Shown here piece by piece: positions 5,096 through 57,155 of a DNA stretch of 64,000 nt. Both the position numbers and the translations under genes were made by a program. The notes below the pieces were generated by a model. It searched no databases, was not told the DNA's origin, and worked only from the letters and a program-made list of their open reading frames with translations. The stretch comes from Vitrella brassicaformis CCMP3155 (taxonomy: Eukaryota; Protista; Chromerida). The DNA lies in the NCBI GenBank assembly GCA_001179505.1, contig CDMY01000437.1, positions 1 through 64,000 on the forward strand, given 5' to 3'. The first letter of the stretch is position 1. Every line of letters starts with the position of its first letter.

Positions 5096-5126
<31 letters not shown>

Positions 5127-29479: not shown

Positions 29480-29950
29480 TCTGATCTCTCTCTCTCTCTC
29501 TCTGTCTGTGTGTGTGTCTGTGTGTGATGTGTGTGAGTGGCTGGGCAACGAGTGTGAAACACACACCGCCGTGTCTGTGTCAATGTGTGTGCAGCAAGCA
29601 ATGCGTCACACATGGATGGATGGACGGACACACAGAGAGTGTGGTGGACCGGTCGGCCTGTCTGCGGGCACATATATGTGTACACATTCAGAGAGGGAGG
29701 GAGAGAGACAGATATCAGCCGTCAGCCACCACGTGCAGCAAACACCAACAATAGCAGATGGCGAGAGAGAGGCAAAACAGACAGACAGAGAGACAGACAG
29801 ACACGGCAGCCAGCCACTGATAAGTGCACACACGAATCGAGTGGCAGATAGACAGAGACTGACCAGTCGGAAAACCCACGCGCACCATTGAAGCCGTCTA
29901 TGTGGCCGACAGTGCCGCTCACATCTCAACACCGCCGCCCAGGAATGCAA
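29480..29950 (-). repeat. Orphan copy of the family F 3' flank with no adjacent coding exons
   Basis: Reverse complement of about 29870-29915 matches GGCCACATAGATGGCTTCAATGGTGCGCGTGGG..TTTTCCGACTGGTCAGTCTCTGTC at 4170-4230. GATATCAGCC..CAGCCACCACGTGCAGCAAACACCAA recurs at about 29712 and 30767. Confidence 0.75.
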
Positions 29951-32488: not shown

Positions 32489-32668
32489 GCCTGTCGAGGC
32501 CGTCAGATCTGCAGACAGGCAGCTTGGCGAGAGAGAGGGGAGGGCGGGCGGGGGAGGCGATGCCCCAAGACGCGATGCCGGGCAACCGGGAAGCAGAAGA
32601 CGATGCGGGAAGGTCGGTCGGTCGGTCGGTCGGTCGGTTAAAAAGGGAAGGAGGGGAGTGCCTTGCCA

Positions 32669-32679
32669 GCTTAGCTCGC
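32669..32679 (+). promoter_or_regulatory. Candidate promoter motif GCTTAGCTCGC
   Basis: Exact match in the divergent gap between copy 4 and the coiled-coil gene, 115 bp upstream of ATG 32794. Confidence 0.6.
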
Positions 32680-32793
32680 ACCTTCCCCCCGGCGAAACCG
32701 CTGCCCCCCGGCGAAGGTGTCATGCAGAGGGGAATGAGTTGAGCAGGATAGTCACCACCAAGATCTTCTTACAGCCAGCCTACGCAATCAGTC

Positions 32794-35700
32794 ATGGAAG
32801 AGGAGTCTGCCGCACCAGCTCAGGAAGAGGAGGAAGGCAACGGCGAAGGCGAGGGCATGGAGACCGAGGAGCAGGAAGACCTCGCCGAGCAGCAAGGCGA
32901 TGAAGAGCTGGCGGCTGCGGAGGATGAAGAAATGGGTGAAGGCGAAGAGGAAGAGCAGGAGTGGGACGAGGAGGAATGGGGCGAAGAGGGCGAGGGATGG
33001 GAGTGGCAAGTGGAGGGAGAGGGAGAGGAAGAGGAAGAGGTAGAGGAGGAGGAGGAGGAGGAAGAACAAGAGCCGGCGGCTGAAGAGGAGGCGCAACCCG
33101 AGGAGGCAGATGAAGATGAACCGATGAATCAGGGCGACGAACAGCAGCCAGACCAGCTACAAGGTGAGCGCGGCCAGCCTCTCGCTCGTCTCACTCACAC
33201 ATGCGCCTTCTCCTCTTTTGTCGTGTGTGGTGTTTGCAGCCGCCGCACACGAGCCGCCGGCTGAACAACCCGGAGATCAGCCCGCCGCTCATCGCATGGA
33301 GCCTGCCGGCCAGCCATCTCCCTCGCTATCCCCAACACCGTCACCATCGCCTTCACCATCACCCGAGGCCCCTCAAGCGCCACGCACTGAAGAGGATGCC
33401 GACGCCGACCAAGTCGACCAGGCCATGCACGAGCAGGACGAAAGCGGCCCAGCCCAGCCCGACCAGCAGCCACAGCCAGAAGAGGCCAAGGACGCCGAGG
33501 CGCCAGCAGCCGAGGCGCTAGCAGCCGAGGCTGGCGTGGAGGAGGAGGAAGAGGAGGACAAATTGGCCGAGCAACCGCCAGACCACGCGGCACCTGCGGC
33601 GGGTGAGATCGAGGCCCATGCCGTGCCTGACGAGGGAGCAGGACAGCCACAGCCAGAAGAGACCGAAGAGGTCGAGGAGGCCGCTGCCGATGCTGAGCAA
33701 GAGCAAGAGGGAGAGACTGAGAAGCAACAGGGAGAGGGAGAGGAGGAGAGGCCGGCAGAGTCGCCACCAGAGGCTGAGGGAGAGGCTGAGGCTGCCCCAG
33801 CGGGTGAGGCCGAGCCACCTGCTCAGATTGGCGAGGAGGCTGAGCAGCCAGAGGTCCAGGAGGTCGAGATGGAGGCCGCTGCAGAAGATGTCGAGGTCAC
33901 GGCCACAGAGGAGGCCGCAGGGGAGGGGGTCGGCGAAGGGGAGGGAGAGGGGGAGGGAGAAGGAGAGGGAGATGGCCAGGCGTCGCAACAGGAGCCTATC
34001 GAGACCGAGGGAGCTCAGCCGACCGATGAGGAGGAGCCCTCTGTCCTTGCTCCCTCACCGGCCGCCGACCAAGACACAGCCGGCGAGAGAGGTCAGCCGA
34101 CCGCCCAGGACGAGGCGACGACCGTCGCTCAAGAGCCCAGCGCACCCCCGCCCCCACCGCCCACCGACCAAGAAATGGCCGCAGCGGAGCCGCCAGCTGA
34201 GGAAGCCATCATGGCCCGAGTTCGAGAGCTCGAAGCGGCTCTGCAGTCGAGCAGGCAGGAGCTGACTCAGACATGCGAGACGTCCAGCAAGCAGGCAGAG
34301 GAGTACCAGCGTCAGATCGCCACGCTCTCGGCATCGGTGGCCGACCACGAGAAGCACACCGCGCAGCTGGACGATCAACTGCGGGTGGAGAAGGACAAGT
34401 CGGCTGCGGCGGTTCAGCAGTGTGATGCGCTCAGCAAGGACAAGACGGCCGCCGAGCAACGCGCCAGCGACCTCGCACGACAGCTAGAAGAGGCCAAGAA
34501 AGAGACGGAGAATCTTCGCGCGGCCATGGCGGCGTCGTCCACTGAGCTCTCTGACGAGCTTGGTGTCGAGAAGGAGAAGAACACCGCCGCGCAAGCGCAG
34601 ATCGAGGGCCTGCAGAAGGAGAGGGACGGGCTGTCGCAGCAGCTGGCCGAAGTCCAAGAGGAGCTCCAGACGCGGATGGCCGAGGCGGAGCGGGGCTTCA
34701 TGGCCATGAGTGAGGAGTCGACCAGGCTGGCAGACGAGCTGACCCGCCAGAAGGAAGCTACAGCCGCGGCGTCAGCCGACCACGACGCCCAGACAACCGC
34801 TCTCGCACAGGAGCTGCAAGCCGAGAGAGACAAGAGCGCCGCCGCCCTGCACCAGGTCGAGACGCTCGAGAAGGAGAGAACCGACCTGTTCGAGCAGCTT
34901 TCCACGGCTCTCGCTGACGGCAAGGCCACCGCCACCGAGCTGGCGACGATCCGCCACCAACATGAGAGACAAGAGAGGCACCTGCAGCGGCTGGAGGCCG
35001 AGAGCAGCCAGCGATCGTCTCTCGAGGCCCGGCTGGCAACAGAGGTGGAGTCACGAAGGCGGGCCATCGAGGCGCTCAGCGGGCTGCAGACAAAGCTCGA
35101 CGAGCAGACGGCTGAGCTGAGCCGTTTGCGGAGGCTGGAGAGGGTGGTGGGTGAGCAGAAGCCGGCGCTTCTCAAGTCGCTTGAGGAGATGGACAAGATG
35201 CGCAAGACGGCCATCGAAGAGAGGAATGCGTGGCGACGACAATACGCCGACAGCCAGGCGGTGAGTCAATGAAGGAGGGAGGGAACCGATACACAGCCCG
35301 ACTCGGTGGCCTCCTGCTCTGTGTGTGTTGTCGTTATCAGCGATGTGAGTCGTTGGAGTCGAAGCTGCGTTCAGTGGAGAAGGAGCTCGAGGAGGCCAAG
35401 GTCACGGCATCCAACGCGCCACAGCCACCCCCAGACCAGCAGGCGGCAGCAGCTGCAGCCGCCGCCGCCGCCGCCGCCCAGGCAGCAACACTCGAGGTGG
35501 ACAAGGCGGTTGTGCGGGAGCAGCTGCTGGCCAAGGTCGACCAGGCCCTGGCTGAGAGGGAGTACGGCAAGATGGACGTGGTGGAGGTCTTCCAGGCCCT
35601 GTCGGTGCTCTGCGAAGGCGAGGGCAAACCTGCCGTAAACAATCTACTAGAACAGGGGGGCGACACGCGTGTTGGTTTGCCATTCTCTCTCCTCTCTGTG

Positions 35701-36666
35701 TGTGTATGTGTGTGAATGTGGTGTGGTCAGTCTGCTTTGGACACGCTGAATCTGCTCAAGGGCATGCACCAGTCCTACGAGCTGGTCGGTCAGGATCCCC
35801 CCCCACATACACAGAGAGACAGAGAGAGAGAGAGGGAGCGAGAGAGGGAGGGACGGTAGATACACACACCACACATCCCTCCATGTGTGTGCCACGGATG
35901 CCGTCAGATGCGCAAGTACTCCAAGCAAGCCGAGGAGGAGCAGGTGCGGCTGCTCGACCTCAACCGCCAGATGGAGCGTCTCGAGGCCGACCGACACGCA
36001 CTCGCCGAGTGGAAGAAGGCACACGAAGAAGTCGTGCAGAACTGGGTGAGGCCGCCTTGACAACAGCAGCAGCAAGGAGTTGCTGTGTGCTGTGTGGTAG
36101 TACCGTCTTGCTCGTATGTGTGTGTGTGTGTGTGTGGTGTGCAGGAGGAAGAGCGGAAGATGCTGGTGGAGCATGCCGACGCCAAGATCTTCGTGCAGGA
36201 GAAACTCTGCCGCTCCGAACAGCAGAACGAGTCCCTACGAAGACAGGTCAGTGTCTCAATGACACACACACACATCCATCCATCCATCCATCTCTCTCTC
36301 ACTGGTCCTGTGTGCTGTGTGTGTCAGCTGATAGCCCGTGACGCCACCATCCTGAAGCAGCGTGCCGCTCTTGACACACGGGACGCCGTCCTGGGCGAAA
36401 AACTCACCACCATGATCAACAACGGTGGGTACCAAGAGGGGGGCCATCTGTGAGTGAGTGGCGAGGCGACCAACTATCTCGGTGTTTGTGTTTGTATGTG
36501 TGTGTGTGTGTGTGTGGACACAGGCATGGTGCCAATGGAGGAGGTCGTGTCGAAGCTGAGTGCCGCCGAGCTCCAGGAGTACCGGCGCGACCCCAAGGCT
36601 GTCCTCAACGACATACTCGACCAGAACAGGTGTGCAGGGTGCAGCCAGTGGGCGGCCGTGAAGGCG

Positions 36667-36697
<31 letters not shown>

Positions 36698-37721
36698 TGC
36701 AGGACGTACCTATGTGAGATGGACGAGTGGGTGAGCGGCCGCAAGGATGACCTCGTCGAGACGAAACTGCGGCTGCAGCAGCAGGAGGAGAGCCTCAAGG
36801 AAACCCAGTACCTGAGCTGAGCTAGACAGACTCACTCACTCAGCGCTACACACACATGGACTGCCTGCCTGCCTGCCTGCTTGTTCCCTCTCTCTCTCAG
36901 GAAGAGCCTTCAGCTGCTGACTGCGGCCCACAGCGACACAATGGCGCAGAAGACCGAAGCCGTCACCAAAAGGTGCGACCACTCGTCCACTCGTCCATTC
37001 AGCCACCTCGGTTGTTGTCCGTGTGTCGTGCAGCAAGCAGCTGGAGTCTGAGCTGCAGCAGGTCAGGAAGGACTGCCACCAGTGGGAAGTCCGCTACCAC
37101 AACGTCGAGCGCATCAGCAAAGAGGCCGAAAAGAAGGTACGTGACAGTGACAGTGACACCACCACCACCACCACACGCCATTGCACCTGTGTGTGTGTGT
37201 GTCTGTGTGTGTGGGTCACTGGTTCAGGTCAAGGCGTTGGAAGAGGACGTGCAGCGTCTGCAGAGCGAGCTGACTGGTGTGAGGGGCGAGCTCACCGAGG
37301 CCACCAAAAGACTGTCGGAGGACGACATTCAGAGGGAGGCGGAGCGACTCAAGCAAGAAGTCGCCGCACTGGTGCGCACCCCTCCCCGCCACACACACAC
37401 GTGCAACTGAATGCGTGTGAGTGTGTGTGTGTTTAGGAGCGGCAGCTGCGCTTACGTGAGGAGCAGGGCAAGGCGTTCGAGCAGCTCAAGCAGGAGAATC
37501 TGGACCTCAAGCTGCGCATCAACTCGCACAGGGAGGCGCAGCTGGAGAGCCAGGTGCTGGAGCTCAAGCAGCTCGTGGCGAGATACAAGGACCAGAACGA
37601 GGGGCTCCACGACAAACTCGCAAAGGTGCAGGTCGACATCCTCATACAGAAAACAGAGCTGACGCAGCTGCAGGTGCGCACAGACGGACAGACACACAGA
37701 CAGACACCATGGATGGCATTG

Positions 37722-37758
<37 letters not shown>

Positions 37759-39906
37759 CGTGTGTGTGTGTGTTGTGTGTCGATAGGACACACGAAAGCG
37801 TCAAGAGCTTGAGCTCGAGGCCGCCCAGAACGACGTCAAGCTGGCCCAGGCACAGAAGGACGAGCAGCTGCAGAAAACTGAGGAAAGGTATACTTACACA
37901 CACACACACACACACACTTGCAGAGGAGAGAGAGGGAGAGACCTGTGTGTGTGTGTGTATGTGTCAGTTTCAAGCAGCGTCTAGGAGAGATGGAGGCCGC
38001 CTTGGGTGAGGTGCAGAAGAAGGCCGACTCTCTGCAAGAGGAGCGCGCGCAGCTCACGGCCAACATAGAGTCAGTGATCGAGCTGTGAAAAAGACCACCA
38101 CGCAGACACAGTCACTGTCCATGTGTGTGTGTGTCTGTTTGCCTGCAGGGCGCTTGAGCAGGACAACAGCACCAGGGCGGCACGAGTGTCGCAGCTAGAG
38201 GAGGAGGTCAAGGCCCTCAACGAGAAGCTGGCCGAGCAGCAGGCCGCCGCGGCCACCGAGGAGCAGCAGCCTGCAGAGGCCCAGCCACAGACAGGTCAGT
38301 GACGTGACGACCCCCACTGCACAAGACACACATCATGATGTGGTTGGTCTGCACAGACGCTGAGTTGCTAGAGGCCAACGAGCGACTGCAGAAGGAGGTG
38401 CAGGCCCTCACTGAGGAGATGGGCAGCAAGACCAAGGAGCTCACCGAGCAGCTCGACGCCAGGCAGCAGGAGCTGGTCAAGCTGTCGGACGAGCTGCGCG
38501 AGGCGCGGAAGGAGATCGAGACGCTCACCGAAAACCGGGCCAGACACGAACAGCAGCAAGAGCAGCTGGAGGAGGTGCAGCGAGAGCTCACCGACGCCAG
38601 ACAGACCATAAGCGACGACAAACAGACATACGAGGTCACTCACACCACACCACACCACACCGCTCGAGTCATCCGTCCACCCAATCGTCCCTCTCTGTGT
38701 CCCTCTCAGGCGGAGATCAAGCGTCTGTCCGGCCGCATAACGGAGCTGGAGCAGGAGCGCGCCACCACCCTGGCAGCAGCGGAGGGCGAGGGCGACCACG
38801 CCCGGCAGCCCGTCGACTCGGCCGAGCTGCAGGAGTACAAGGAGTGTCTGGCGGCGGCCAGCACCCGGTGCGACCAACTCAACACCAAAGTGCAGAGCCT
38901 CACTACCGACAGGTATGTGGGTGGGCATCAATGCTGCCCAGAGAGAGGTGGACGGACAGATGACCTGGTGTGTGTTCTGATTGTGTGTGTGTGTCAGGGA
39001 CACCTGGCAGAAGAAGTACGAGGACCTACTCATGGCCTGCAAGATCAGGTAAGACATACCCCCACCCCCCCCCACACACACGGTGGGCAGGCAGGGAGAG
39101 GGTCACCTGCGTTGCTTCATCCATCCATCCATCCATCCCCCTTTGTCTGTGTCGATTCAGTGGTGGCATCATCAGCGAGGATGCCTCCCCAGCGGCAGCA
39201 GCAACCGCGGCAGCCGCAGCAGCAGCAGGTGGTAGTGCAGAGGGGCCCCTGACAAGCCGACCTGCCGCATCGTCGTTCCTCCAGGTCGGTCACTCAGGCA
39301 TTGCGTGGCCTCAGTTGTGATGTTTGTGTGTCCAGCAATACCGGAGTGAGGAAGAGGCGGATAGCCGCGCGACTGAGCTGGCGGAGGAGACCCGGCGGCA
39401 GATAGAGTGGCTGGGGCGGTCGGAGGAGGCACAGCAACCACAGCAACAACAGCAAGAGCAGCCGCAGGTCACTAGTACTGAATATGGGAGGGAGGGAGGG
39501 AATGACTGACTGCAGTGTGCCTGTTTGTGTCGTGTGTGGCGTATGTGCAGGAGTGGTCTGGGGCGGCTGTGGACGAGCCAATGGCAGAGGTACACAGCCT
39601 CCTACACACACACACACGCCCGCGCGCGATAAGCGGCGGCACACTGATGGATCCTCCCGTCACGTCTTCTGTGTGGCCTTCGTCCAGGTGGCTGGAGGAG
39701 GCCAGTCAACCAAGCGCAAGCGGCCGCTTGGCGAGTCTGAGCCACCTGCTGCAGCAGCAGCTGCTGCTGCTGCAGCTGCCGTGGCCCCCAGCACTGAGGG
39801 CGGCGCTGCTGGCGGTGGTGGTGGGAATGCGGCGGCTAGTGGCACTGGCAGTGTGGGCGAGGCCAAGGCGAAGGCCAAGACGAAGCGGCGAAAGGTCGAT
39901 GGGTAG
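32794..39906 (+). CDS. Very large acidic / coiled-coil protein with C-terminal basic NLS-like motifs
   Basis: About 20 exons. E/A/P/Q-rich N-terminus (MEEESAAPAQEEEEG...), long heptad-rich E/Q/K/L exons (RVRELEAALQSSRQEL..., LEANERLQKEVQAL...), C-terminal TKRKRP and AKTKRRKVDG*. Could be two genes, but I found no break. Confidence 0.75.
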
Positions 39907-40248
39907 ACAGAGGCCGATACATAGTCTGTCTTTCGGTCGGTCTGTCTGTCTGCCTGTAGCCGGATGGATGGATGGATGGCGTGTCTGTCTGTCTGTCTGG
40001 ACGTAGGTAGCCAGGTTGGTGCGACAGCTGACTGAGCGTTGGTTGGTTGGTTGGTTGGTCCACCCCTTCATTGATTTGGTCGAGGTCTGATCGACATCAA
40101 ATTGCGAACATGCCACGCATGACATAAACACACCGACGACACATCGACACGTCTCTCTCTTGGTCGACATAGACGGCCGGCCGGTCACTGATAAATCGTT
40201 GCACCTCCGTGTGTGTGTGTGTGCGACGGCATTCGCTCATTCACTCAT

Positions 40249-40681
40249 TCACACGCCATCAGCGGGCATGGACTGGGTGAGAAGGGGGTGGCTGGGCTCC
40301 TGCAGCAGCTCGTCCATCAGGTCGTCGTCAGCACTCTCGCGCAGCAGCTCAACCATACCCCGCGGCAAAATGGGCGTGTCTGTGCAGCGCAGCGACAGGG
40401 AGCCAGGCCACCAACACACACACAATTCACCACACCACACCCTGGCCGCTTAGCTCTGCTCCCTCCCCTACTCGCATCAGCGGCCTTCTTCGATCGGTGG
40501 CTGAGAGCGACGTAGCGGAAGGGCATGTTGGTGGAGTCATGCGCACCCTGTGTGTGTGACGGAGGGAGGGAAGAGGCACAAGACGTGTGTGTGGGGAAGC
40601 GAAGCGGCTGGGTGGGCGGCTGACTGACCGTGCGTATGTCAGGGTGGTCCACATACGGGATCTTCTCAAGCGCGACGCCAT

Positions 40682-40725
<44 letters not shown>

Positions 40726-41790
40726 GGCGTCCCACTGCCAGCGTCGCACCCACCCCCACACCTTCAAGAACGATCTTGCACACCAGCATCGCGGTGTCGG
40801 TCGTCATCTGAACATCATGGTGCGCAAACGCCCCTCAATCCGTCCCTCCCACAGGCACCTGCCCACCCACCTGCACACTCCCGAGGTTTCGTCTGTGAGG
40901 GAACCCTACCTTCCGCAGCTCCTGCGTCCGATCGTCCGACGGCACATTGCCTGGGCCAGACATCAATCAATCAATCACACACGGCACGACAGCAGCAGGC
41001 ACACCACACAGCCCTGCTGCTCAACTCAGCTCAACTGGCCTGCCTGCCGCCTGTGTCTGTGTGTGGTCACTCACCTAGAATGCCCCCAAACAGCACCGTG
41101 TCGAACAGAGCGGCGTCTGCGGGCGTGAGCGGCTCGGAGGCGTCCATCTGACACACACACGCATACACACAAATGAAATGAAGAGGCCCGGCCCGGCCGC
41201 TCTTGATTGGCGATAGTGTCCTCCTCCTCACATCCATCAGCACAGTGCGCTCTCGCGGGAAGTCTTTCTGGAGATCAGCAATGGACTCTGCGGACACACA
41301 ACAAAGCGGACACAACGAGGGCCCTTTCAGAGGTCTGCCTGCGGAGTCGTGCAGGGCAGGGCGTGGCTATGGGTGGCTGCCTGTGTAGACGCGCGGCGCA
41401 AAGCGGCTGTCCACACAGGCGAAGGACCTGCACTGACACACACACACGCAATGAGGCAGGCAGTCAGTCAGTCAACCAGCGGGTCGATCAACAGACAGGG
41501 ATACCCACCTGTCCTCATTTGGCCACTTGGTGAAGGCGAGGCGCTCGTCCTTGACCACCTCGCACATGTGGCCGTACTCCAGCGCACACCACCGCTGAAA
41601 TCATGATGCAGTCCAGCCAAACACAGAACAACGTCCGCTCCGATGCTGCTGGTTCGTTCCTTTGTCTCTGCAGCAGTGCGCATCTGACCGGCACGCCCTC
41701 CTCCAGGTGCTCCACCGCATAGATCTTCCCTTTGCCGCCGCCAGCTGCAGCGGCTGCTGCTGCCTTGACATCTGATGAGTCGGCCATCAC
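40249..41790 (-). CDS. SFM1: SPOUT-family protein-arginine methyltransferase SFM1 homologue
   Basis: Spliced product has YAVEHLEEGVP|RWCALEY, LMD|MDASEPLTPADAALFDTVLFGGILG, MTTDTA, IPYVDHPDI, TNMPFRYV, PILPRGMVELLRESADDDL. These match the Sfm1 motifs (YIIEHME, FGGILGD, QMTTDTA, EMPFRYV, PILP.GM.DL). One GC-AG intron. Confidence 0.92.
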
Positions 41791-41894
41791 TCAAGGGCAG
41801 CAGTTTCTGTCGCGCACTGCCTGAGGATCCATCTGCACCAATGTGTGCAGGATATCCTGCCTGCGTATTTTTGCCTTCTCCCCTCGAGGCGCCT

Positions 41895-41905
41895 GCGAGC
41901 TAAGC
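41895..41905 (-). promoter_or_regulatory. Candidate promoter motif GCTTAGCTCGC (reverse strand)
   Basis: GCGAGCTAAGC in the SFM1/ABCG divergent gap, 105 bp upstream of the SFM1 ATG. Confidence 0.6.
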
Positions 41906-42262
41906 CGCGAAACCTGCACTGAACGACACAAACATCCTTCTGTTCTTTTCTCTTCTCTCTGGGACAGTTGCAGCAGCAGAAAGGCACGCAAGAAGAGCCG
42001 TTCATTGTCCCCTCAACTCAACAACTCACCAACACAACCGCCCAACGTCGGAGGGAGAGACCGACACAACCAACCACACCACCCACACCAACGACCCGAC
42101 CTCTCCTCTGTCTGTCTGTCTGTCCTCTCTGCCTATTTCATCAAGCGAAGGAAGATCCACACACACACGCCTTGTCACTGGTCACTGGTCAGTCAGCTCT
42201 CGGTCACGGCAACCGAGTGTGTGTGTGGACTGTAACTGAGACTTCGGCGAGGGAGGGAAGGG

Positions 42263-44630
42263 ATGCAGTTCAAGGGCGAGCGGAAGTACACGCCCGTGTC
42301 CATACCAGTGGTCAGTCAGCACAACACACACACGTGCGCAGACCAACGACATGAAGGCTCGCTCGGGCTGTAAGCCTTTCCCTCTCTGTGTGTGTGTCTT
42401 GGCTGTCAGGACATAGAATGGCGTAACCTAGTCTATACGGTCAGGAGCAAAGGTGGCGGCAAGGGCGGCGGCGGCCACCAGGGCTATAAGAAGAAGAAGG
42501 CCGTGGAGACGGAGATCCTTCACGGCATCAATGGCTGCGTCAAGAGCGGCGAGTTCGTCGCCGTCATGGGGCCTTCTGGCAGCGGCAAGACCAGCCTGCT
42601 CAACGCACTCTCCTCGCGCACATCTGTGGGCGTCAGCGGAGACCTCCTGGTAATGGGCTTTCACACACTGATGGATGGATGGATCGAGACAATGGCCGGG
42701 GTGGGTGCTCTGCTGTGTGTGTCGGGCAGATCAACGGTGAGAATCGGTCCAAGGCTGCCAAGAGGGTCACTGGCTACGTCATGCAGCGCGACATGTACGT
42801 GTGTGTGCACACACACACACAGAGAGAGAGAGAGAGATGATACCCCTGTCTGTCTCTCACACACGGTGCAGATTCTTCGAGTACCTGACGGTGTTCGACA
42901 CGCTGCGGTACACCGCCCTGCTGCGGATGAGCAAGACGCTGACCAAGGAGGAGAAGATCTCGAGGGTTCGCTCCGTCATGGAGCAGCTGGGACTCACCAA
43001 ATGCTCGTCAACCATCATCGTAAGGACTCACACGCACACACACACTCGCACCTGTGTTGATGGTGCCAACGGTGTGTGTGTGTGTCCATCAGGGGAACGC
43101 CTTCAACCGTGGGATATCTGGCGGGGAGCTGAAGCGGCTCAACATAGCCAACGAGCTGCTCTTCAACCCCTCACTCCTCATTCTGGGTGCGCTGCACTGC
43201 ACCACACTCTCGCACACAGACAGACAGACAGGCAGACAGGCAGACACACAGATGGGCGTCGAATATCTGACTGGTTTGCAGACGAGCCGACGTCTGGCCT
43301 GGACAGCAGCAGCGCACTGGCGCTCACGTCGACCCTCAAAGAGATGGCAGAGAAGGCCAGGAGAACGGTACTCCCAAACCAGACCCACACCAAACACACA
43401 CAAAGCTGCCACCGCACCGTGTGTGTATGTATGTGTGTGTGGTGTGGCTGCAGATCATATGTTCGATTCACCAGCCGTCGAGTCAGATATTTGCCCAGTT
43501 CGACCGGCTCATCCTGATGATGGGCGGCCACATCGTCTACCAGGGCGACGCCCATGCCGCCTACAGCTACTTCAGCTCAATCGGTACCCTCCCCCCCCCT
43601 CCAGCCCTCCCACGCCCCCACCCCACACACACCGACACACACCCTGTAGCAAACCAAACAACCAAGGCGCTTGTGTGTGTGTGTGTGGATGAGTGCAGGT
43701 CACCAGTGCCCCGTCGGCTTCAACATGGCCGACTACCTGATGGACCTGCTCAACGAGCCGCAGCTGCAGGACAAGCTCGTCAAGGCGTACGCGCAGCGCT
43801 GCACCGTCGACGACGAGGGCCGCTACAGCATGACGGGGTGCGTGGCCATCCTCCCCCCCACCGTCAGCACCACCACCAAGCTCGCCCTCACCCCCACAGC
43901 TGCGACAACCGACAAGGGCGCGCTCTCCCCAACGATGGCATCTTCTGACAATGACGCCTCCAAGACCTCACACACAGCAGCAGAGGACGACTCAGACCTC
44001 AGCAACAAGGTCAGACAGAGCCCCACCCACCTCCACCATACCGGACTTTCTCTCTGTCTCTCTCTCTGTCCGTGTGTCAGTCATCCGAGTCGCCCGACCA
44101 GGGTGAGGAGCTGGCGGGAATGGCTGACCCCGAGCCCGCCTCGCCCGTGCGGCGGCGGAAGTCGTCGCAGCACGATGTCGAGAGGGGGGACGCCCCCGGG
44201 TGCTCATCGCCGATTTCGGCAGCGTCGCCCCGCACGACCTACACGCGTCAGAAGAGCGTCAAGGAGCTGGTGGAGGAGACCACACAGACACCGCCGTACT
44301 GGGAACTGGTGCGCATTTCCCCCACCCCCCCTCACATACACACACAGACAGAGAGACAGAGAGATGTGTCACCTCTCTCTGCGTGTGTGTCCGTCACGGT
44401 CAGTGTGCGGTTTTGTGGCAGCGGGCCCTGAAGACAGGTTCAGGCGGCGTGCTGACCAAGCTCAACCTCTTTCAGTGCGTCGCCGTGGCCACCATCTGCG
44501 GGCTGCTCTGGTGGCAGAACCTCACAAGCTACACAGAGGCCAAGCTGCAGGACCGCCTGGGCATCCTCTTCTTCATCAAGTAATCAAGAGCCCCGACCCC
44601 ACAGCCCACCCACCACTTGCCCCCTCCCTC

Positions 44631-44661
<31 letters not shown>

Positions 44662-45577: not shown

Positions 45578-45610
<33 letters not shown>

Positions 45611-45732
45611 TCAGAGACACACACATGGACGGGGCTGTGTGTGTGTGTGTGTATTGTGTAGGTTTCTTCATCGTGCTGCGGTTCACCACCTACCTGGTGC
45701 TGCGGTTCGGCAAGCTCCTCAAGCTAGAATGA
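42263..45732 (+). CDS. ABCG (White-family) half transporter, NBD-TMD
   Basis: Walker A GPSGSGKTSLL, signature ISGGELKR, Walker B LLIL|DEPTSGLDS, H-loop SIHQP, CP.GFNMADY, and a TMD with ERSVVAKER..YFLA. Ends FGKLLKLE*. Start codon is tentative. Confidence 0.95.
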
Positions 45733-47158
45733 GAATGAGACACAGGCGATCCCACTCCCAGAGAGAGAGAGAGAGAGAGGCCTGTTCTGTGGGTCTGTGC
45801 GTAACGCTCTGAGAGCTGGTGGAAGGGGTGCATATGTGTGTGAAGGGGACAAGGGGACAACTTCCTGAAGTTGTCGTGTGCCGCCTGTCTGTTGTTTGCC
45901 GTCGAGTCCCTCTGCTGACGACCTCCGGCCGGGGCAAAACTCTTGGTCCGAAGGTCTCGCGTAGCGGGATTCGACGGAGACAACCGACAGAGAGCACGAG
46001 ACAGATAGAATGGTTTCGTGTGCCGGCTGGATCCGGTCCGTCTGTTTGCTCGTGTGGGGTGCGTGTGTGCGTGTGTCTTCATCTGCTCAGTGGGCGTGTA
46101 CCATGGAGGGATGGATGGGGTGCATCGGGAGGGGCCTTCGTTGTTTGTTTTTTGAGGGGCCGAGGGGTTTCTTTCCTTTTCGTTTTCCTTTCGTTTTGTT
46201 TGCCGTCTGTTAACGAACGAAGTGCACATTGTTTTTCTCTGTGCTGCATTATCATGATGTGACAAAACCGTACCACACACCAAGTCGATCTTTTCTTACG
46301 GACCTCTTTCCGTGTGCGTCTCGTCCTGTCTCCCTTCTCATACACAGACAGCCAACACACACAACACAACACAACACAACACCAGACAGACAGCCACATT
46401 TGGCGGCCGGCGGGATGCATATTAGTCAGTCAGTCACTTTGAAAAAATTCGATTTGCTTACTGCCTGCCTCTCTGCTGTCCGTCCGTGTGATACAGGGAG
46501 AGAGGGGGGCGAGTGCCGTCCGTTGCTTTGCTTTCATACCGTTCACACCCACAGCCATCCATAAAGTGCACTGCACTCATCGAGTCTCTCCATCGCTCTC
46601 TGCTCTTTTTGCTTGCGCAGAGGGGGAGGACGGACCGATGAGATGAGGGCAGACACACACAGGCAGTGCAGTGGAGTGAAGTGGAAGGGTGCACGGTGCA
46701 CACGGCTCTCTGCGTGCGTGTGCGTGGGTGCCCTTTTCTAGTGGATGGATGGATGGATGGGGATGCACAACACACACAGTTGTGTGTGTGCAGACACGAC
46801 TTCATACGGACGGGGGAGCGGACACAGAGAGAGAGCGAGCATATAGAGGAGAGGCTGGCCGCACCACACACACACAAAGCGGGTGCAGCAGAGAGAGTCA
46901 GTGGTGCGAGGGTCCGATCCCCAGTAGTAGTAAGAGTGATTTTTAGTGCCTCCCTCGATGATTCATTAACGCTGCGGCCAGCTGATGTTTGTGTGCACGT
47001 GCGTTGCCTCTGCTGTCTGTCTGTCTGTCTCCCCATGTGTGAGCGTCCTCGCCTTTAAGCGCCTTCCTTGCTCCTTGTCCATCATCTCATCTAGCCTGAC
47101 CATGGGTGTTTTGTTGGTTCTTTTCCCGTCTGGCTGCCTACGTCGTCGTCGTCACGTG

Positions 47159-47206
<48 letters not shown>

Positions 47207-47209
47207 GGG

Positions 47210-47509
47210 NNNNNNNNNNNNNNNNNNNNNNNNNNNNNNNNNNNNNNNNNNNNNNNNNNNNNNNNNNNNNNNNNNNNNNNNNNNNNNNNNNNNNNNNNNN
47301 NNNNNNNNNNNNNNNNNNNNNNNNNNNNNNNNNNNNNNNNNNNNNNNNNNNNNNNNNNNNNNNNNNNNNNNNNNNNNNNNNNNNNNNNNNNNNNNNNNNN
47401 NNNNNNNNNNNNNNNNNNNNNNNNNNNNNNNNNNNNNNNNNNNNNNNNNNNNNNNNNNNNNNNNNNNNNNNNNNNNNNNNNNNNNNNNNNNNNNNNNNNN
47501 NNNNNNNNN
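47210..47509. other. Assembly gap (300 N) flanked by (GT)n and poly-G
   Basis: Directly visible. Confidence 0.99.
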
Positions 47510-48740
47510 GAAGGCCTCTCTGTCTGACTGTCTGTCTGTGTGTGAAGGGACCACTGCACCACTGCCGCCACATTTTTGGTCAAACAAGGCTGACAGGCTG
47601 AGGGGCAGGGAGGGAGGGAGAGAGAGAGAGAGGGCACCTGGGCGTCTATCTACGTGCCTATAGGTACCTTGCTTGTCAGTGGCAGGGCAGCTGGGCACTC
47701 TTGTAGTGAGTGCTGCAAGAGAATGATGAGTTGAGTGATTGCTGACTGAGAGTTTTGTCTTTTTGTTTCCTCTCGAGGGATCCCACCACTCATTCGCACA
47801 TTGAGTGCAGCGCGCCGCGCCCAGTCGACCACACAGCTGCAGATCGGCACACCACACGTGTGTGTGTGTGTGTGTGTATATGCTGTGTGGCTCTCGACAC
47901 GGCCCGACCGTGGTGTGAGGTGTTTGTTGTGTATGGTAGCTACTATCGCATCTGTCTGTGTATGTGTGCATTGATTGGGAAGGGCTGCAGGCCAGCTGAG
48001 ACTGACCATTGCCCGGCAGCTGGCAGCGACTGAGCGAATGACTGAGGACTGAGTGTGTATCTATGGGATATGCTGTTTTATCTGTCCGTCTGTCTGTATA
48101 TCCGTCTGTCTGTCTGTCTGATTGTGGCGCATGACGTGTGTGACGACTGACTGACTGACTGACTGACCAGAGGGCACGAAGAGCAGCAGACTGGTGCGTG
48201 CGTGGCCAAGGGGACTGACTTTATCCGGTGGCCTTTCTCTCTTCGGATCAATAATCCTGATAACGATGCAGCCTCTCGCCGAACGATTGCAACACCTTTA
48301 CGCAGACAGACAGACAGACAGAGAGCTGTCCCCATCAGTCAGTCAGTCAGCGCTATCACGTGTGTGTCAAACCATAGCCAGGCAGAAACGCATCAGCATC
48401 AAACAGACGAGGGATGGCTGGAGGGGTGGGTGACAGGCCAACACAGTCGCTTCGTTCAACAGACGCATGGCAGAAATCTGCCGCTCATCGAAGGTGAGTC
48501 GTGGAGACCAAGCACACACGCAGCCAGGAATCGTGAAAAAACAGACCTGATCAAAATGTCCCTGTGGACAAGAGGCACCCCGCACCCTTGAAATCAGTCT
48601 GCCCATCTCTTCGTTCACACGAACACGCAGGCACACAGGAAAGAAACAAGCCGCCGCCACCAGCTCGCCTCTCTCTCTCTCGCCGCTCGCCTCTCTCTCT
48701 GCGCGTGTCGGCCGCTGGGTGGATCGGTCTGCTTGTCTAC

Positions 48741-49412
48741 CTACGCCGAAGTGGATTGGTTCTTCTCGATGTAGCTGACGGCGTCGGCGACGGTGACGAT
48801 GTTGGTGGCCTCCTCGTCGGGGATCTCAATCCCGAACTTCTCCTCAAAGGCCATGACCAGCTCCACGCTGTCAAGACTGTCGGCTCCCAGGTCCTGCACA
48901 CAGACAGACAGACAGACACCCATCACACACAGAGAGAGAGAGAGAGAGAGACAAATCGACTGCATGCCCGTTGGTCATGAGTCATGGTTGGTTGTTGTGA
49001 TGACGTGCGCACCTGCACGAAGTTGGCGGAGTCGGTGACCTTCTCCTTGTCGACGCCAAGCTGCTCCGCCACCAGGTCCTTGACACGCTCAAGCACCTCC
49101 GGCTCGGCCCGCAGCACCAGCAGCGACTGATGGGTGGCGGGGCGATACCGCAGACCTCCACGAAGCACCACAGAAGGGGCGGGCGCCACAAACGCTGCAC
49201 ACACACACACACACACACGCGCAGATCAGGTCACATCAGAGACCGCGCTGGCTGCATGAGCCGCGCATCTATGTCGGCGTGCGTGTCTTGTCTCCACCTG
49301 TGCATCTGATCTGATCTGCCGTCGCGTGCGGGTGTTGAGTGAGCATACCGCTGCTGAGGGTGACGAGTGCAGCGAGCACAGCGCCGAAGAGGGCGGTCCT
49401 TCTGAACATCAT
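48741..49412 (-). CDS. ACP: Acyl carrier protein (type II FAS) with bipartite plastid-targeting leader
   Basis: Three exons: [21 protein letters not shown]|[14 protein letters not shown]...[18 protein letters not shown]..|[29 protein letters not shown]. Phosphopantetheine motif DSL. Signal peptide followed by A-F and a basic transit peptide. Confidence 0.97.
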
Positions 49413-49749
49413 GGCGACTCGGCTGCCTTCAGGAAGAGAGTGACGAGGGCTGATGGGAGGAGCGGGTGTGAGCGTCAGCGTCGCTGTGTTTTACGTCGAC
49501 CCCAGTGGATTTGATCTCGCAAGCAAAAGCCGGGAACTTCGGCCTTTTCTGGTGCAGAATCAAGCCACACGCGCTGTGCCAGACCGCATTGCCAACACGC
49601 AATGAGCCCGCGGATCATCCGCTCTCCGCTGCGTTGACCGCCAGCCATTCGGGAAAAAAGCAGCCGCGAGGCGTCCACACGTCGTCGTTATCGGCCCTCT
49701 CTCCCTCCCTCCCTCTGTCTGTCTGTCCGTCGGTCTGTCGGTCGTTTAC

Positions 49750-50713
<964 letters not shown>

Positions 50714-51536
50714 ATAGAGCTCATCCATATGGATGCTGCATGTGTGGCGGCTTGTTTGTCGGTCTTTTGCCGCCCATTGTTTTGCTACGGGGCAAGGGGA
50801 TGGGGCTGTGGGGGTGGGGGGGATGATGGGGGCGGGGGAGCCAGAGAGTCCTCCCTGCAGCGTGTGTGTGTGTGTGTGTGTTTACATCACCCCGTGTGAG
50901 CATGTCATCGACCACGGGGAGACGACGATGCTTTGCTTCTGCACGTCCATCCGTCGTCCGGCTATATGGCTATTTGTGCCTGCCTGCCTGCCTGGAACAG
51001 ACGGAACAGCGATGCTTCGTCGCTCTCACCAGTGAGTGACAGACACCCTGGCACAGCTTAGCATAGCTTAGCATAGCATAGCATAGCACTGACCCACACG
51101 ACACATGCCATGCATCCGCCCGTGTGTGTGTGTTTGTACAAACAAACAAACCGATCGCCGTTTTTTGGTCTTCATAACCAACCCATTCATTAACCACATA
51201 GATGGATAAGCCACAGCACATGGCTGCGTCGCGTCCACACACACACACGCACACGACACGCACACACATCACAGGGACCCAGGGGCAGACAGTCGGTCGG
51301 TCGGTCGGTCGGTCGCAGAAGCATCGACAAGTGAGCAGCAAGGCAAGCAAGGCAGGGAGCGAGGAGGGAAGGGAGGGATCATTCATCCCCTCATTACATT
51401 ATATCCACACACACCATTTCATGAGCATGAGTGAGACCGAACACCAAACGAGTGAGTCAAAACTGGCTGGCTATTCCCTTGCTCCCTCCCCATCTCACAC
51501 CCACACCCACCCCACCCACACACGGCCTTTGCTACC

Positions 51537-52881
51537 CTACCCCCCTCTGCTAAGGTCGCCTCCCGGCAGGAAGGAGGCGATCGACGGCACAATGAAATCG
51601 GGCGCCCGGCTCGCATTCTCAGGGCTGCAGGGCAGTGGAGGCGACATGAATGAATGACACGACAAGAGAGAGGGTCGTTATGGGGGGTTGGTTGTCTGTC
51701 TGGGTGTCCGCTGCATACCTCTCTGCCTGCTGTTTGCTGTTGACGCCCGTCTCCACCATTAGAGTCGCTGCACACACACACACAGAGAGAGACAGGGAGG
51801 GAGGGAGAGGGGTGAGCAGGTTGTGGGGGGGGACACAGCGCAGCAACCGTCTCAGTGGCTTCAATTACCGACCGATGTTGGCCGTCCGCCCGAACTCTAT
51901 GTCGGTGAACAGATTGTCACCCACCATGCACAAGCTCTCCCGGGGCATACTGAACCGACTGATCACGCCACACACACACACACACACACACACGACACAC
52001 ACAGAATCCATATCCCCCCTGTCCCCCCCACATCCACCCCCACTGGCCACCTGCAGATGTCCTCGATGATGAACGGCCCCGGCTTGCCGACGATGTAAGG
52101 CGGCCTGTCCGCCACGATCTCGAGTGCGCTGACGAAGGTGCCTGCCCCGGGGAGCCTGCGGCCGTTGGCGGGGAAGTGTCTGTCCTTGTTGGTGACGAGG
52201 AAGAGCCGCGATGGGTCGGTGTTGAGGAGCATGCCGGCGTAGGAGATCTTGTAATAGTTGACCTCGTGGTCGAAACCCATCACGACGGCGCGAATGCTCT
52301 CGTCGAGCTGCCCGCCGCAATGCAATCAACGCACACACCGTGAGTGCATGTGAAGGGACGACCAACTGTCTGTGTGTGGGTGTGGGGGGGTGAAAAGGGT
52401 GTGTGTGTGTGTGGAGGAGGNNNNNNNNNNNNNNNNNNNNNNNNNNNNNNNNNNNNNNNNNNNNNNNNNNNNNNNNNNNNNNNNNNNNNNNNNNNNNNNN
52501 NNNNNNNNNNNNNNNNNNNNNNNNNNNNNNNNNNNNNNNNNNNNNNNNNNNNNNNNNNNNNNNNNNNNNNNNNNNNNNNNNNNNNNNNNNNNNNNNNNNN
52601 NNNNNNNNNNNNNNNNNNNNNNNNNNNNNNNNNNNNNNNNNNNNNNNNNNNNNNNNNNNNNNNNNNNNNNNNNNNNNNNNNNNNNNNNNNNNNNNNNNNN
52701 NNNNNNNNNNNNNNNNNNNNGTGTGTGGAGGAGGGGGGGGGGGTGGGGGGGGTGTTACCTCAACTCTGGCCATGTCGTATGGCAGTGGGAACTGCCCCGT
52801 GTGTGCGCTGTTGTCGAACACGTCTACCCCTTTCGCCCGGATCTCCTCCTTCATCGCGTCCGCACCTATCACATAGCTGTG

Positions 52882-52912
<31 letters not shown>

Positions 52913-53749
52913 GCCATGACCCGGGTCTGTCGTTGTCTGTCTGTTTGTGTGTGTTGTGCGCCGCTTACGCTTTGCCCTTAAAGCCGATTTTCTGGAGGTA
53001 GTTTGCCGTGGCTGACGCGGCGCAGTAGATGCTCTCCTCGGCGATGTCGTCAAACCCTCGACGCTGGAACATCTCGACGTACTGAATACACACACACACA
53101 CACACACACACACACGTACACGTGGATCAACGCACCAACGCATCAAGAAAGAAGCACAAGGGAAGCAGTATGGACCTGCTTCTTGTTGAATATGGAGTTG
53201 TTGGTGCAGAAGAAGACTCGCTTCCCCATGGCCCGCAGCCGCACCAGCGCCTCCCGCGCCCCAGCGATCACCTCCGTCCCCTCCCACAACACGCCGTCCA
53301 TGTCAAAGATGAAACCCTGACAAGAACAAACAGACGAACACACACGCACACACACACACACAGAGAGAGAGAGAGCGTGTGTCACATGCATCCTTCGGTT
53401 CGCTTCTCATCAGCGCGATGACCTCATATCTGTTGACGATCTCCTTCTCGATGTCGGCGAAGTCGTCCAGATACCGACAGAGCTCCGGCACCTCAATGGT
53501 CTCCGCCGACCCGCTGCCCATGGTAGAAATATCAGCGGCGCGTGGCACCGATGGCCGTGGCAGTACAGGCGGCTGCCAGTGCGGCGGGCGCGAGAGTCTG
53601 CCGCAGGTATACGCAGCAGACAGGAAGAGGGCGATGGGCAGCTGCCGCTGTCTACTTGTTGGGTGAGCCCGAGGGGTCCGCGGCTTGGAAGGACGGACAG
53701 CTACTTGTGTGAGGGATGGAACGACGCTGCTGATGAGCACAGATCTCAT
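51537..53749 (-). CDS. PGP: HAD-IIA phosphatase (phosphoglycolate / 4-nitrophenyl phosphatase family)
   Basis: FIFDMDGVLW, FCTNNS, AVVMGFD, FLVTNKD, PGAGT, IVGKP, MVGDNLFTDIEFG, TLMVETGV, PDFIVPS. In-frame ATGs at 53749 (long) and 53521 (short). Confidence 0.92.
52421..52720. other. Assembly gap (300 N) inside a PGP intron
   Basis: The flanking exons join in frame (MARVE|LDESIRAV), and GTGTGTGGAGGAGG occurs on both sides of the gap. Confidence 0.95.
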
Positions 53750-53776
53750 CAAACACGTTGCCCCCTTCCTTCGTGA

Positions 53777-53787
53777 GCTTAGCTCGC
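53777..53787 (+). promoter_or_regulatory. Candidate promoter motif GCTTAGCTCGC
   Basis: Exact match in the PGP / small-gene divergent gap, 114 bp upstream of ATG 53901. Confidence 0.6.
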
Positions 53788-53900
53788 AGGTGGGGATCGG
53801 GCGGTGGTTTCAGTCGAGAGAGGAGGCTTTGCCCAAGTAGTCGTTCGTGCATTTGCTGAGAGAGAAGATATCTGCCTCGAAATAGCGTAGATCGGCGGGT

Positions 53901-54622
53901 ATGAGAGGTCCCGACGCTCTCGGCGTTGGCTCCTGCATGATGACGATGCTCGTGCTGCTGCTCATCTGCGTCTGCTCCTTCACTGGTACGCCGCACACCG
54001 AGAGAACAGAAAGATCAGTGAGTGCCACTGCGATGCATCGACATAAGTGCGTGTTGTCCTGTCGCCTCCTTCCTTCTGTCGGTTGGTTCATTCCTGCGAC
54101 GCCTGGCGTGGCGCATGCAGATGCATTCCATCTTCCTCCCCACCAGCTGCTGCCCTCGCGGCCCCAGACACTCCCACACCCACAGCCACACCCACAGCCA
54201 CAGCCACAGGGACAGCCGCAGACAGTGTTGCGGCAGTACGCCGGAACGGAGCAGCTCGACGCCAGTGGTGCTGGTGGTGGCGATACGCTCATGCAGGCGC
54301 TCGTGGCGGGGCGGATCAGCGAGGAGGTGTTCCTGTACGAGCGTGACCGGCAGGAGCGAGAGCGGCTGCTGGCGCTGTTTGAGAAGGAGTCCTCTGACGA
54401 CATGAAGAAGCAGCTCCTCGACCTGCTTATGCGCAAGGAAGGTGCAGACACAGACAGACAGGGAGGGAGGGAGGGAGGGGGAGGGGAGGCTGCACACACG
54501 ACGGATTCTCCCTCTGTGTCTGTGTGTGTGTGTGAGGTTGACATGCAGGCGGGATGATGATGAAGGCCGGCGGGCCGAAGAAGGGGGCGAAGAAGGCGGC
54601 GCCCAAGAAACCGCTCCCCTGA
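53901..54622 (+). CDS. Small signal-peptide protein, possibly plastid-targeted; unknown function
   Basis: Exons about 53901-53986, 54121-54441, 54549-54622: ..MLVLLLICVCSFT|DAFHLPPHQ..PQ repeats..ISEEVFLYERDRQERERLLALFEKE..|GGMMMKAGGPKKGAKKAAPKKPLP*. Confidence 0.65.
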
Positions 54623-55573
54623 CAGCGACAAACCCGTCCACCCACCTCCACACGCGGCACGGCGAGCGGAGAGAGCGGGCGGAGATTTTTAGAGCTCGCG
54701 TGATATGCGAGATCAGATCATCATGACGGCAGACTGGCTGGTGAAAAACAAGACAGGATGGGATGGCGGTGCTTAGCGTAGGTCTTACGGACGGGCGGAC
54801 GGGACGAGTGCAGCTGTAGGGTAGGGCTTACCTTACGAGAGAGGGAGGGAGGGAGGGAGGGTGGGTGGGTGTATTGTGGGTGGGTAGGTGGGCAGATGGG
54901 ATGGATGGGTGTTGCGGATTTAAGCCTCTCTCGGTGTGCGTGGCGTGGGTAGGCGATGGGTGATTTGTGTTGTGTTGTGCGGTGTGGTGTGGTGTGGTGT
55001 GGTGTACAGCGACTCCCTCCCTCCCATGTGGCCTCTTGACATTTCCATGGATGGACTATGCCAGTGGCCGCCTCGTCTCCCTCCCTCTCTCCCTCTCTCT
55101 CCCTCTCTCTCTCTCTCTCTTGCCTTAGTCTAGCCTTGCGCCTGTACAAAGGATGCTATGCTGCCTGCCTCCTCCCCTCCCCTCATGGCCTCCCCCCTGT
55201 GCGCTCTGTGAGTGACAGACAAGTGTAGGTTGCGTCGACTGACATGGATGGACGAACAACGGATCTGATCTTAAGAATGACCGGATCGGAGCTCATCTTG
55301 ATCAACTGTAGCTAGCCAATGTCAGTCAGTCACTTATTCCCACACTCAGGCAGGACATTACTTACGCACATCACATCGATTCGAAACAATCGCCTTCGCA
55401 CACGTACGTCACACGATCGCCTTCCCGACCGTGTGCGCTATCTAAGACATCTATATAGGCTCCGCCCAACCTGACACACACACGGAAAGACACATAGACA
55501 CAATTCTGTTCGTCGTGTGTGTGGGCATCTTCTGCTCGTCTCAGCCGTGTTTGGTGCAAACATACCCAGCTGT

Positions 55574-56923
55574 CTACTGGCCGAAGAGGATGGCTGAGAT
55601 GACGGCCCCCAGCACCACACGCGCCAGCTGAGTGGTCTGCGGGAAGCGGTCCCTGAAGGCACCACCCACACCACACACAGCCGGCTCGGTCGTGTAGACC
55701 CACACAATCACTGCGAACGAATGGCAGGAGAGCATATAGCAGCGGACAGTGCATGAGAGTATGTGCCTCCCTGGGTCTGTCACCCTCCTCGCCTCTTTTG
55801 TTATACCGTGCGGGGCTGACCGTTGATGCCCGGCAGATCCTTGACGGCGATCCATGCGACGAACGAGTGGCCGGCGTCGGTGAGCACGAGACAGCGCCAA
55901 GGGAAGCGATGTGATGTGGTTGTGGTGCATCCCTCCACTGGTGTGTGGGGGGACTGTGTCAGCAGGTTGAGCAGCCGGTCGTTGTCGACATGCCTGACAC
56001 ACACACACAACATACACTCGTGTGACGTGAGCATTCCCACACAGAGTGATGCCCCACCTCACCTGTTGATAGAATGGCCGGTTGTGGTGTTGGTCTGGTG
56101 AGTCTCCGTGAAGTGGTAGAGGACGATCCACTTGACGAACGACGACACAGACGAGTAGTCACGAGCCAACGAAATCAGCGACTGCCAGCCCTCGGGCGGA
56201 CCATAGTCGATGCTGCTGCGGACGGGCGGGTCATGCTGCTGTCGGTGCTGCTGGTAGGGGTGGTTGGGAGGGAGGGGCGGGTCGATGTCGATCTCGAAGC
56301 CGTACTGGTCCTTGATAGCCCGCAGCCCGTTGCCGTGTTGGAACAGCTGGAAGGTCACGCCGTTGCCGAAGTGGATGTGGGGGCCGACCATCTTGAGCTG
56401 AGCCAACACACGGGGAGCGGCCAAATACGCCTACACACACAACACATCAACACATTGACCACACACCGATTGAGAGCCATCCCTCCTCCCTCCCTCCCTC
56501 CCTCGGTTGGCTTACCGTCTTGTTTGGGTATTGGTGCAGATCGCCCGCAGTGAGGCTCACAGGCAGCTGGCAGTTGCCGCACTGCCCCGCCAGCCCAACC
56601 ACCTCGCTCATCTCACTCCAGCCGCCCGCCTCCGTCACACACAGCGCCGCCAGCAGGTCACCCACACCCATCTGCTGGTCGTCGAATGTCAGCAGCTGCT
56701 GTCCGTTGGCCGTCCGCCGCAGCCCCGCCTGTGTGCCGAGCGAATGGCGGAGCCGCTGCCGCAGCTGAGCCGCTTTGAAGAGCTCTCTGAGCCAGCGGCA
56801 TGTGGCCCTCAGCTGCAGGACATCATCGAGGCTGAGAAGGTAGAAGGTGCGGCGGCCGACGAAGATGTACTCGATGGGGTGCTGCTGCTGCTGGTCGGGC
56901 TGCTGTTGCTGTGTGTCCTGCAT
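55574..56923 (-). CDS. Family F copy 5, short form (MQDTQQQQPDQQQQHPIEYIF...)
   Basis: Four exons, close paralog of copy 4. Ends AILFGQ*. Confidence 0.85.
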
Positions 56924-57051
56924 GGCAGTCAAGATCTGCCGACAGAGGCGGATGGACGAGAGAAAGAGAGGGCGGGCTGGGGGCGATGCCTCAAGACGAG
57001 ATGCCGGGAAGAAGCAGAAGACGATGCGAAAAGGTCATGTCTTTCCCTCCA

Positions 57052-57062
57052 GCTTAGCTCGC
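57052..57062 (+). promoter_or_regulatory. Candidate promoter motif GCTTAGCTCGC
   Basis: Exact match in the copy 5 / hypothetical-gene gap, 94 bp upstream of ATG 57156. Confidence 0.6.
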
Positions 57063-57155
57063 TGTCAGGCTAGGACATTGCGTGAAACTGTTCGCCCCGC
57101 GTCGCTGCGGGGAGGTATTCCTGAAACCGCTCTGGAAGGGAGACGTTCTGTATGT

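Follow-up and report, generated by a model that had tools for sequence, protein, structure and literature searches.

Two copies of a Vitrella brassicaformis orphan gene family diverge at a generic promoter word in a short head-to-head spacer

Family F copies and the segment common to copies 4 and 5

The 64,000-nucleotide (nt) stretch of Vitrella brassicaformis CCMP3155 DNA analyzed here (the window; contig C437 of the 72.7 Mb, 1,064-contig assembly on which all genome counts are based) contains six copies of a gene family termed family F. Copies 1 to 3 are arranged in tandem near the start of the window on the plus strand, copies 4 and 5 lie on the minus strand, and one further copy is found at the far end (Table 1). 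GC makes up about 58% of the window, and GT/CT repeats abound in the introns. This work concerns copies 4 and 5, whose upstream similarity stops sharply at a 14-letter motif, CCAGCTTAGCTCGC, beyond which each copy faces a different gene.

The initial annotation had reported that the upstream regions of copies 4 and 5 align up to the motif and diverge beyond it, and its coordinates and sequence strings for both copies proved correct. Translation starts at the ATG at 32488 in copy 4 and at 56923 in copy 5, both on the minus strand, the latter being the start of the database protein P0001. A single BLAST alignment connects the two segments with 83% identity over 1678 nt, introns included, while the leaders, counted together with the first coding bases, are 84.8% identical over 230 nt. 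From the ATG to the motif, the local alignment score of 115 has to be compared with 18.4 ± 3.0 in shuffled sequences, and none of 300 shuffles reached this value. In the 400 nt beyond the motif, no similarity between copies 4 and 5 was detected (score of 19 versus 18.4 ± 2.2 in shuffles). The 14-mer is exact in both copies, which also means that the 7-letter prefix CCAGCTT in front of the core AGCTCGCA is common to them. The motif forms an island of identity, as directly inside of it 12 nt of copy 5 and 50 nt of copy 4, the latter with the (GGTC)6 microsatellite, fail to align. At the opposite end, the similarity also has a sharp edge, approximately 150 nt after the stop codon. Taken together, copies 4 and 5 are DNA-level duplicates, and their common segment would comprise a single transcription unit and the proximal promoter belonging to it. 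Both assembly gaps of the window fall between these copies and touch none of the stretches compared, which leaves only the 24.4 kb spacing between copy 4 and copy 5 uncertain.

In both cases, the motif sits in a spacer of roughly 300 nt between the family F copy and an unrelated head-to-head gene. The open reading frames (ORFs) of these neighbours start 114 nt (copy 4) and 94 nt (copy 5) past the motif, and the two neighbours are unrelated to one another. A six-codon upstream ORF (window 32722-32742) was noticed between the motif and the ATG of the copy 4 neighbour at 32794.

Table 1. Features of the window discussed in the text (positions in the window; strand as given).
Feature	Position	Strand	Remarks
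Family F regions	1-8600, 29576-32488, 55577-56923, 62683-64000		
Variant motif GCTCAGCTCGC	12665..12675	+	Site assigned to an ankyrin gene in the initial annotation; AAACCCTAA, telomere-repeat-like, follows after about 25 nt
Copy 4 segment in common with copy 5	30960..32679	-	From the motif through leader, exons and introns to about 150 nt behind the stop codon; BLAST, sharp 3' end
Copy 4 exon 1	32090..32488	-	133 codons from ATG 32488; translation
Copy 4 leader and proximal promoter	32489..32665	-	Conserved islands alternate with non-aligning stretches
(GGTC)6 microsatellite	32612..32635	.	Copy 4 leader only; accounts for part of the length gap versus copy 5
Motif CCAGCTTAGCTCGC, then A	32666..32679	+	Core is the generic AGCTCGCA; points to the plus-strand neighbour
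Copy 4 neighbour, acidic coiled-coil protein	32794..35272	+	Exon 1 ORF from ATG 32794, then 702-codon ORF; weak coiled-coil Pfam matches only
Other copy of GCTTAGCTCGC(A)	41895..41908	-	Unrelated place in the window
Assembly gap	47210..47509		Between copies 4 and 5
Assembly gap	52421..52720		Between copies 4 and 5
Other copy of GCTTAGCTCGC(A)	53774..53787	+	A 218-codon ORF begins 113 nt downstream; 1.6 kb from the copy 5 3' end
Copy 5 segment in common with copy 4	55431..57062	-	Coding region 55577-56923 is database protein P0001 (361 amino acids)
Motif CCAGCTTAGCTCGC, then T	57049..57062	+	Points to the plus-strand neighbour
Second generic promoter motif GACATTGCGTGAAAC	57074..57088	+	11 nt past the first motif, outside the copy 4/5 similarity
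Copy 5 neighbour ORF	57157..57935	+	259 codons; no Pfam family

With exon 1 of copy 4 as a query, at least 150 genomic copies of family F were recognized among 317 candidates, and many contigs carry arrays of 4-8 copies each. The genes occur in two builds, a short one with its own ATG and a long one with extra upstream exons, to which copies 3 and 6 of the window belong; these extra exons are present in many family copies. Protein searches, for which the exons and one natural read-through ORF served as queries, returned no sequence relatives in Pfam or in a PDB sequence profile search, and all named protein matches came from V. brassicaformis CCMP3155. The AlphaFold model of P0001, with a mean predicted local distance difference test score (pLDDT) of 74, gave no convincing fold match with Foldseek and VIA-align, the best structural Z of 5.9 extending over a generic alpha/beta C-terminal part. 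For a few members, the database lists other domains: one bears the source name CBM20, and another has a precomputed Pfam match to the IQ motif. By these searches, family F is a Vitrella-specific orphan family.

A generic and directional promoter word

Genome-wide, AGCTCGCA was found at 7,692 sites compared with 2,061 for the reversed control. The excess persists for longer versions of the word, with 535 versus 104 sites for GCTYAGCTCGC and 10 versus 0 sites for the exact 14-mer. The sites are clustered as well, since 17 pairs at a distance of at most 40 nt (34 sites with a partner) occur among the first 100 sites listed. Eight of the ten exact 14-mer sites lie elsewhere than at copies 4 and 5, and seven of them are independent, with no family F exon within 1.5 kb and unrelated flanks. 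At several of these generic sites, a start codon follows 18-55 nt on, and in one case the frame that it opens is at least 492 codons long. L001 (contig C86, around position 38152) has a head-to-head spacer that is extremely compact, the 14-mer being flanked by the start codons of two divergent ORFs (at least 492 and 130 codons) only approximately 80 nt from one another. As listed in Table 1, two further copies of the word are present in the window. The one at 53774 is not a flanking repeat of the copy 5 unit because it is 1.6 kb away from the 3' end of that copy. Judging from these counts, AGCTCGCA is a generic promoter element of V. brassicaformis, predicted to stand at thousands of unrelated genes.

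The spacer of copy 5 holds a second generic motif shortly after the first. Its core, CATTNCGTGAAAC, has 168 genomic sites versus 1 for the control. AGCTCGC is found 1-30 nt upstream of this core on the same strand in 51 cases, as opposed to 8 cases in inverted orientation and 9 in reverse order, and from this ordered same-strand excess it follows that the first word is directional. In the copy 5 spacer, the two-word pair points at the neighbour and away from the family gene. The full second word reads (TAG)GACATTNCGTGAAAC and often continues with CGCTCTC; 37 sites match 15 letters exactly. AGCTCGC and the second word look like an ordered two-part promoter module. No published Vitrella promoter word of this kind was found in the literature searched. 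The present results lend independent support to AGCTCGCA as a real and directional promoter word of this organism. Both words could help to annotate gene starts and to design expression constructs in chromerids.

The locus L003, which has 42 nt in common with the far side of copy 5, was considered as an empty site, that is, a neighbour with the motif and no family gene. It really contains two adjacent generic motifs and is not a paralogous locus. A metagenome scan for empty sites in other strains or species gave no relatives.

The initial annotation had described the same geometry for an ankyrin gene at the variant motif GCTCAGCTCGC. A minus-strand ATG, the putative start of the ankyrin gene, is present nearby at 12497. 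Telomere-repeat-like words (AAACCCTAA and GGGTTTCA) adjoin the promoter word at window positions 12665-12710 and also upstream of the family copies L012 and L013; these words are reminiscent of the plant telo-box.

Boundaries of similarity across the family

For a family-wide comparison, the upstream flanks (up to 1.45 kb each) of 92 of the at least 150 copies were used, and the boundary of each copy was defined as its deepest upstream similarity to any other copy. The 5' ends of similarity were scattered from -12 to beyond -1400. They fell between -12 and -99 in 25 copies, between -100 and -399 in 15, between -400 and -999 in 31 and between -1000 and -1400 in 7, while in 13 copies the similarity reached the end of the fetched flank. 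The initial annotation had proposed that family F units recombine or integrate at the motif, and it had named scattered breakpoints as evidence to the contrary; with regards to the 92 copies, scatter away from the motif is largely what was observed.

Within -40 to -400, AGCTCGC occurs in 28 instances distributed over 26 of the 92 copies, where about 6 would be expected (p = 7e-11), and the remaining 66 copies have no motif nearby. The distances range from -75 to -368, 24 of the 28 instances are followed by A, and 19 point away from the family gene while 9 point toward it. Similarity detectable by BLAST stops short of the motif in 19 of the 26 copies that bear one; copies 4 and 5 are counted here, as their motif is an island beyond the detectable stretch. 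For the pairs L012/L013, L055/L076, L063/L074 and L018/L019, the similarity continues well past the motif position, and L012 and L013 remain alike for more than 1.4 kb past it.

A perfect local duplicate of 682 nt with three copies of the promoter word was noted at L008/L009 (contig C929, around 192227 and 193209). It may be an assembly artefact because the identical copies are approximately 300 nt apart and the interval was left unaligned by BLAST.

Inheritance of the motif and mosaicism in the subfamily

Copies 4 (L011) and 5 (L014) belong to a subfamily that also comprises L012, L013, L016 and L020, all of which have a leader of approximately 120 nt in common. The state of the motif differs among the members. 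In L013 the motif is decayed, with an inner flank like that of copy 4, and L020 shows a variant form located in the same place with respect to the leader. In L016 the motif is inverted, points toward the family gene and forms a pair with a word resembling the second motif. L012 has lost the motif. The states in L013, L020 and L016 indicate that the motif belonged to the ancestral promoter of the subfamily.

Beyond the motif, L011, L014, L012/L013 and L020 all differ, which results in four different far sides. A match between L014 and L013 past the motif, suggested by MAFFT, was not upheld, and local alignment with shuffles revealed no similarity among L011, L014 and L013 there. On the far side of L020, a gene for an NAD-binding dehydrogenase begins 33 nt past the motif. 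A SelO-like identity considered for the neighbour of L016 had no Pfam support and was dropped. The same stop at the motif was found in a second subfamily (L054, L063, L068 and L064) and in the pair L030/L038.

Inside the unit, the relationships between the copies change along the sequence. Over an initial 550 nt that covers exon 1, intron 1 and exon 2, the ten dispersed copies of the subfamily (L011-L020) are mostly 80-96% identical, and past this point the identity is roughly 60-80% and the closest relative shifts along the sequence. Intron 1 matches the exons in its degree of conservation, and introns align between copies. In quartet comparisons, all three possible groupings were about equally supported (site counts of 32/29/14, 42/25/21 and 34/33/27). 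The sites that group copy 4 with copy 5 are concentrated in the 5' part, with 14 of 16 sites there compared with 20 of 78 elsewhere (Fisher p = 6e-6). This suggests that the 5' part has been homogenized locally, with gene conversion as the probable mechanism.

Interpretation and alternative explanations

The sharp stop upstream of copies 4 and 5 is probably explained by a generic core-promoter word that forms the outer edge of the subfamily promoter within a short shared spacer, with ordinary duplication, conversion and the survival of working copies accounting for the rest. In such a process, the unit would be duplicated together with its introns, from the core-promoter word to approximately 150 nt past the stop codon. 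A viable junction with a different neighbour would then have to fall into the narrow gap beyond the word, and gene conversion among the copies would keep their 5' parts alike and sharpen the boundary. Similarity would stop at the word because the leader and coding sequence of the neighbour already occupy the 30-115 nt that follow, and conversion combined with the survival of working copies would be sufficient for the sharp edge.

Since the word faces the neighbouring gene, the promoter is probably shared. A promoter held in common with the head-to-head gene is plausible from the layout of the spacer, and the motif may act as a shared bidirectional promoter element. The initial annotation had offered, as its simpler alternative, that the motif is the unit's own promoter and its last conserved element. 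This is supported with one modification, in that the motif was inherited with the unit in the subfamily but is a generic word facing the neighbour. If the explanation by ordinary duplication holds, a large orphan family in the compact genome of a malaria-parasite relative keeps only short functional promoter islands, and sharp duplication edges require no special machinery.

Some observations weigh against this explanation. The motif faces the neighbour and not the family gene, and that it is the unit's own promoter is something we infer. Furthermore, among copies with a clearly inherited motif, similarity in many cases ends within approximately 0-20 nt of the outer edge of the motif in front of different neighbours, as seen in L011, L014, L012/L013 and L020, in L054 versus L063 and in L030/L038. 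Edges this close to the motif are tighter than random breakpoints in a gap of 90-115 nt would be expected to give in most cases.

These edges are the starting point for an alternative in which the word itself anchors the junctions. A word of the AGCTCGCA type in nearly every head-to-head spacer could provide the microhomology that joins family cassettes to resident promoters, with ectopic recombination, template switching or conversion tracts being resolved at the only sequence that unrelated promoters have in common. The four far sides that join at the motif in the copy 4/5 subfamily, with a different gene beginning within 33-114 nt on each of them, would fit this well, as would the second subfamily and the pair L030/L038. 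Moreover, the inherited motif of copy 5 forms a normal ordered pair with the second motif outside the similarity, as if the junction lay inside or just after the first word, and anchoring at the word is the only explanation that directly accounts for boundaries hugging it in two subfamilies and one further pair. However, the boundaries are scattered family-wide, most copies have no motif, and several pairs with an inherited motif are alike beyond it. A word of 8-14 nt is also short for homologous recombination, and the narrow gap before the start codon of the neighbour forces boundaries near the motif anyway. We therefore regard anchoring at the word as unlikely. If it were true, the family would spread by plugging into existing bidirectional promoters; should boundaries at the word turn out to be in genome-wide excess, promoter words as recombination anchors would be the more interesting result.

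It could also be argued that the two motifs were never inherited together, each being the neighbour's own generic word, so that the true similarity would end at the non-aligning stretch near the microsatellite and the 14-letter identity would be coincidental. The failure of 12 nt versus 50 nt to align directly inside the motif is in line with this, as are the exact 14-mers at seven unrelated promoters and the many other copies in which the motif lies 22-95 nt past the end of family similarity. The orientation of the motif and its pairing with the second one would likewise suit a promoter of the neighbour. The extra letters are difficult to reconcile with such a coincidence, though. CCA precedes GCTTAGCTCGC only at about chance frequency (10 of 535 GCTYAGCTCGC sites) and the GCTT prefix is present in only 4 of the 28 family instances, and therefore the probability that all 7 extra letters match by chance is roughly 0.2%. 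In addition, L013 and L020 have decayed or related versions at the same position, and the inner flank in L013 is that of copy 4. An independent origin of the two motifs hence appears quite improbable.

Finally, the segment was inspected for the hallmarks of mobile elements and retrocopies. At the copy 4/5 unit, there is no target-site duplication, the longest word common to the outer flanks being 3 nt, and there are no terminal inverted repeats at its ends. A second flanking motif is missing; other copies of the motif come no closer to the 3' ends than 1.6-2.5 kb. The 3' end is not fixed, as the similarity between L011 and L013 continues past the end of that between L011 and L014, and neither is the orientation of the site, since the motif can point either toward the family gene or away from it and is inverted in L016 within the subfamily itself. 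No recombinase or transposase Pfam domain was detected in 14 window ORFs and 30 family proteins, a scan that was not exhaustive for the window. The 3' boundary shows no poly(A) remnant or A-run, which, together with the retained introns, argues against retroposition. The common segment is sized as one transcription unit and has sharp ends, but a mobile cassette of the tyrosine-recombinase, Helitron or DDE type that attaches at the motif, like the RNA-mediated copying of an unspliced transcript, is largely refuted by these results, including the lack of Helitron-like ends, and is highly improbable. Hence, with no mobile hallmarks, scattered ends and a generic word, site-specific insertion as raised in the initial annotation is not supported; the target-site duplications, shared termini and recombinase genes that would accompany it were not found in the sequences scanned.

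Comparison with known systems

With site-specific mobile elements such as integrase, Helitron or DDE cassettes, the family F unit has in common a discrete, sharp-ended segment beside a recurring short word, while none of their defining hallmarks were found for it. Parallels also exist to bidirectional and recruited promoters. The recruitment of a neighbour's bidirectional promoter by new gene copies is described for mammalian retrocopies, and here, too, a family copy stands head-to-head with an unrelated gene approximately 300 nt off, and the only recognizable generic core element faces that neighbour. In contrast to retrocopies, the family F copies are DNA-level copies with introns and a conserved leader of their own, and within the subfamily the promoter word travels with the unit. 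Tandem or segmental duplication of a lineage-specific multigene family with gene conversion (concerted evolution) is matched in the arrays, the kept introns, the changing closest relative, the homogenized 5' part and the boundaries that vary between pairs. What sets family F apart from this familiar scheme is that the 5' boundaries in some subfamilies coincide again and again with a single generic promoter word, located within a bidirectional spacer that is very short.

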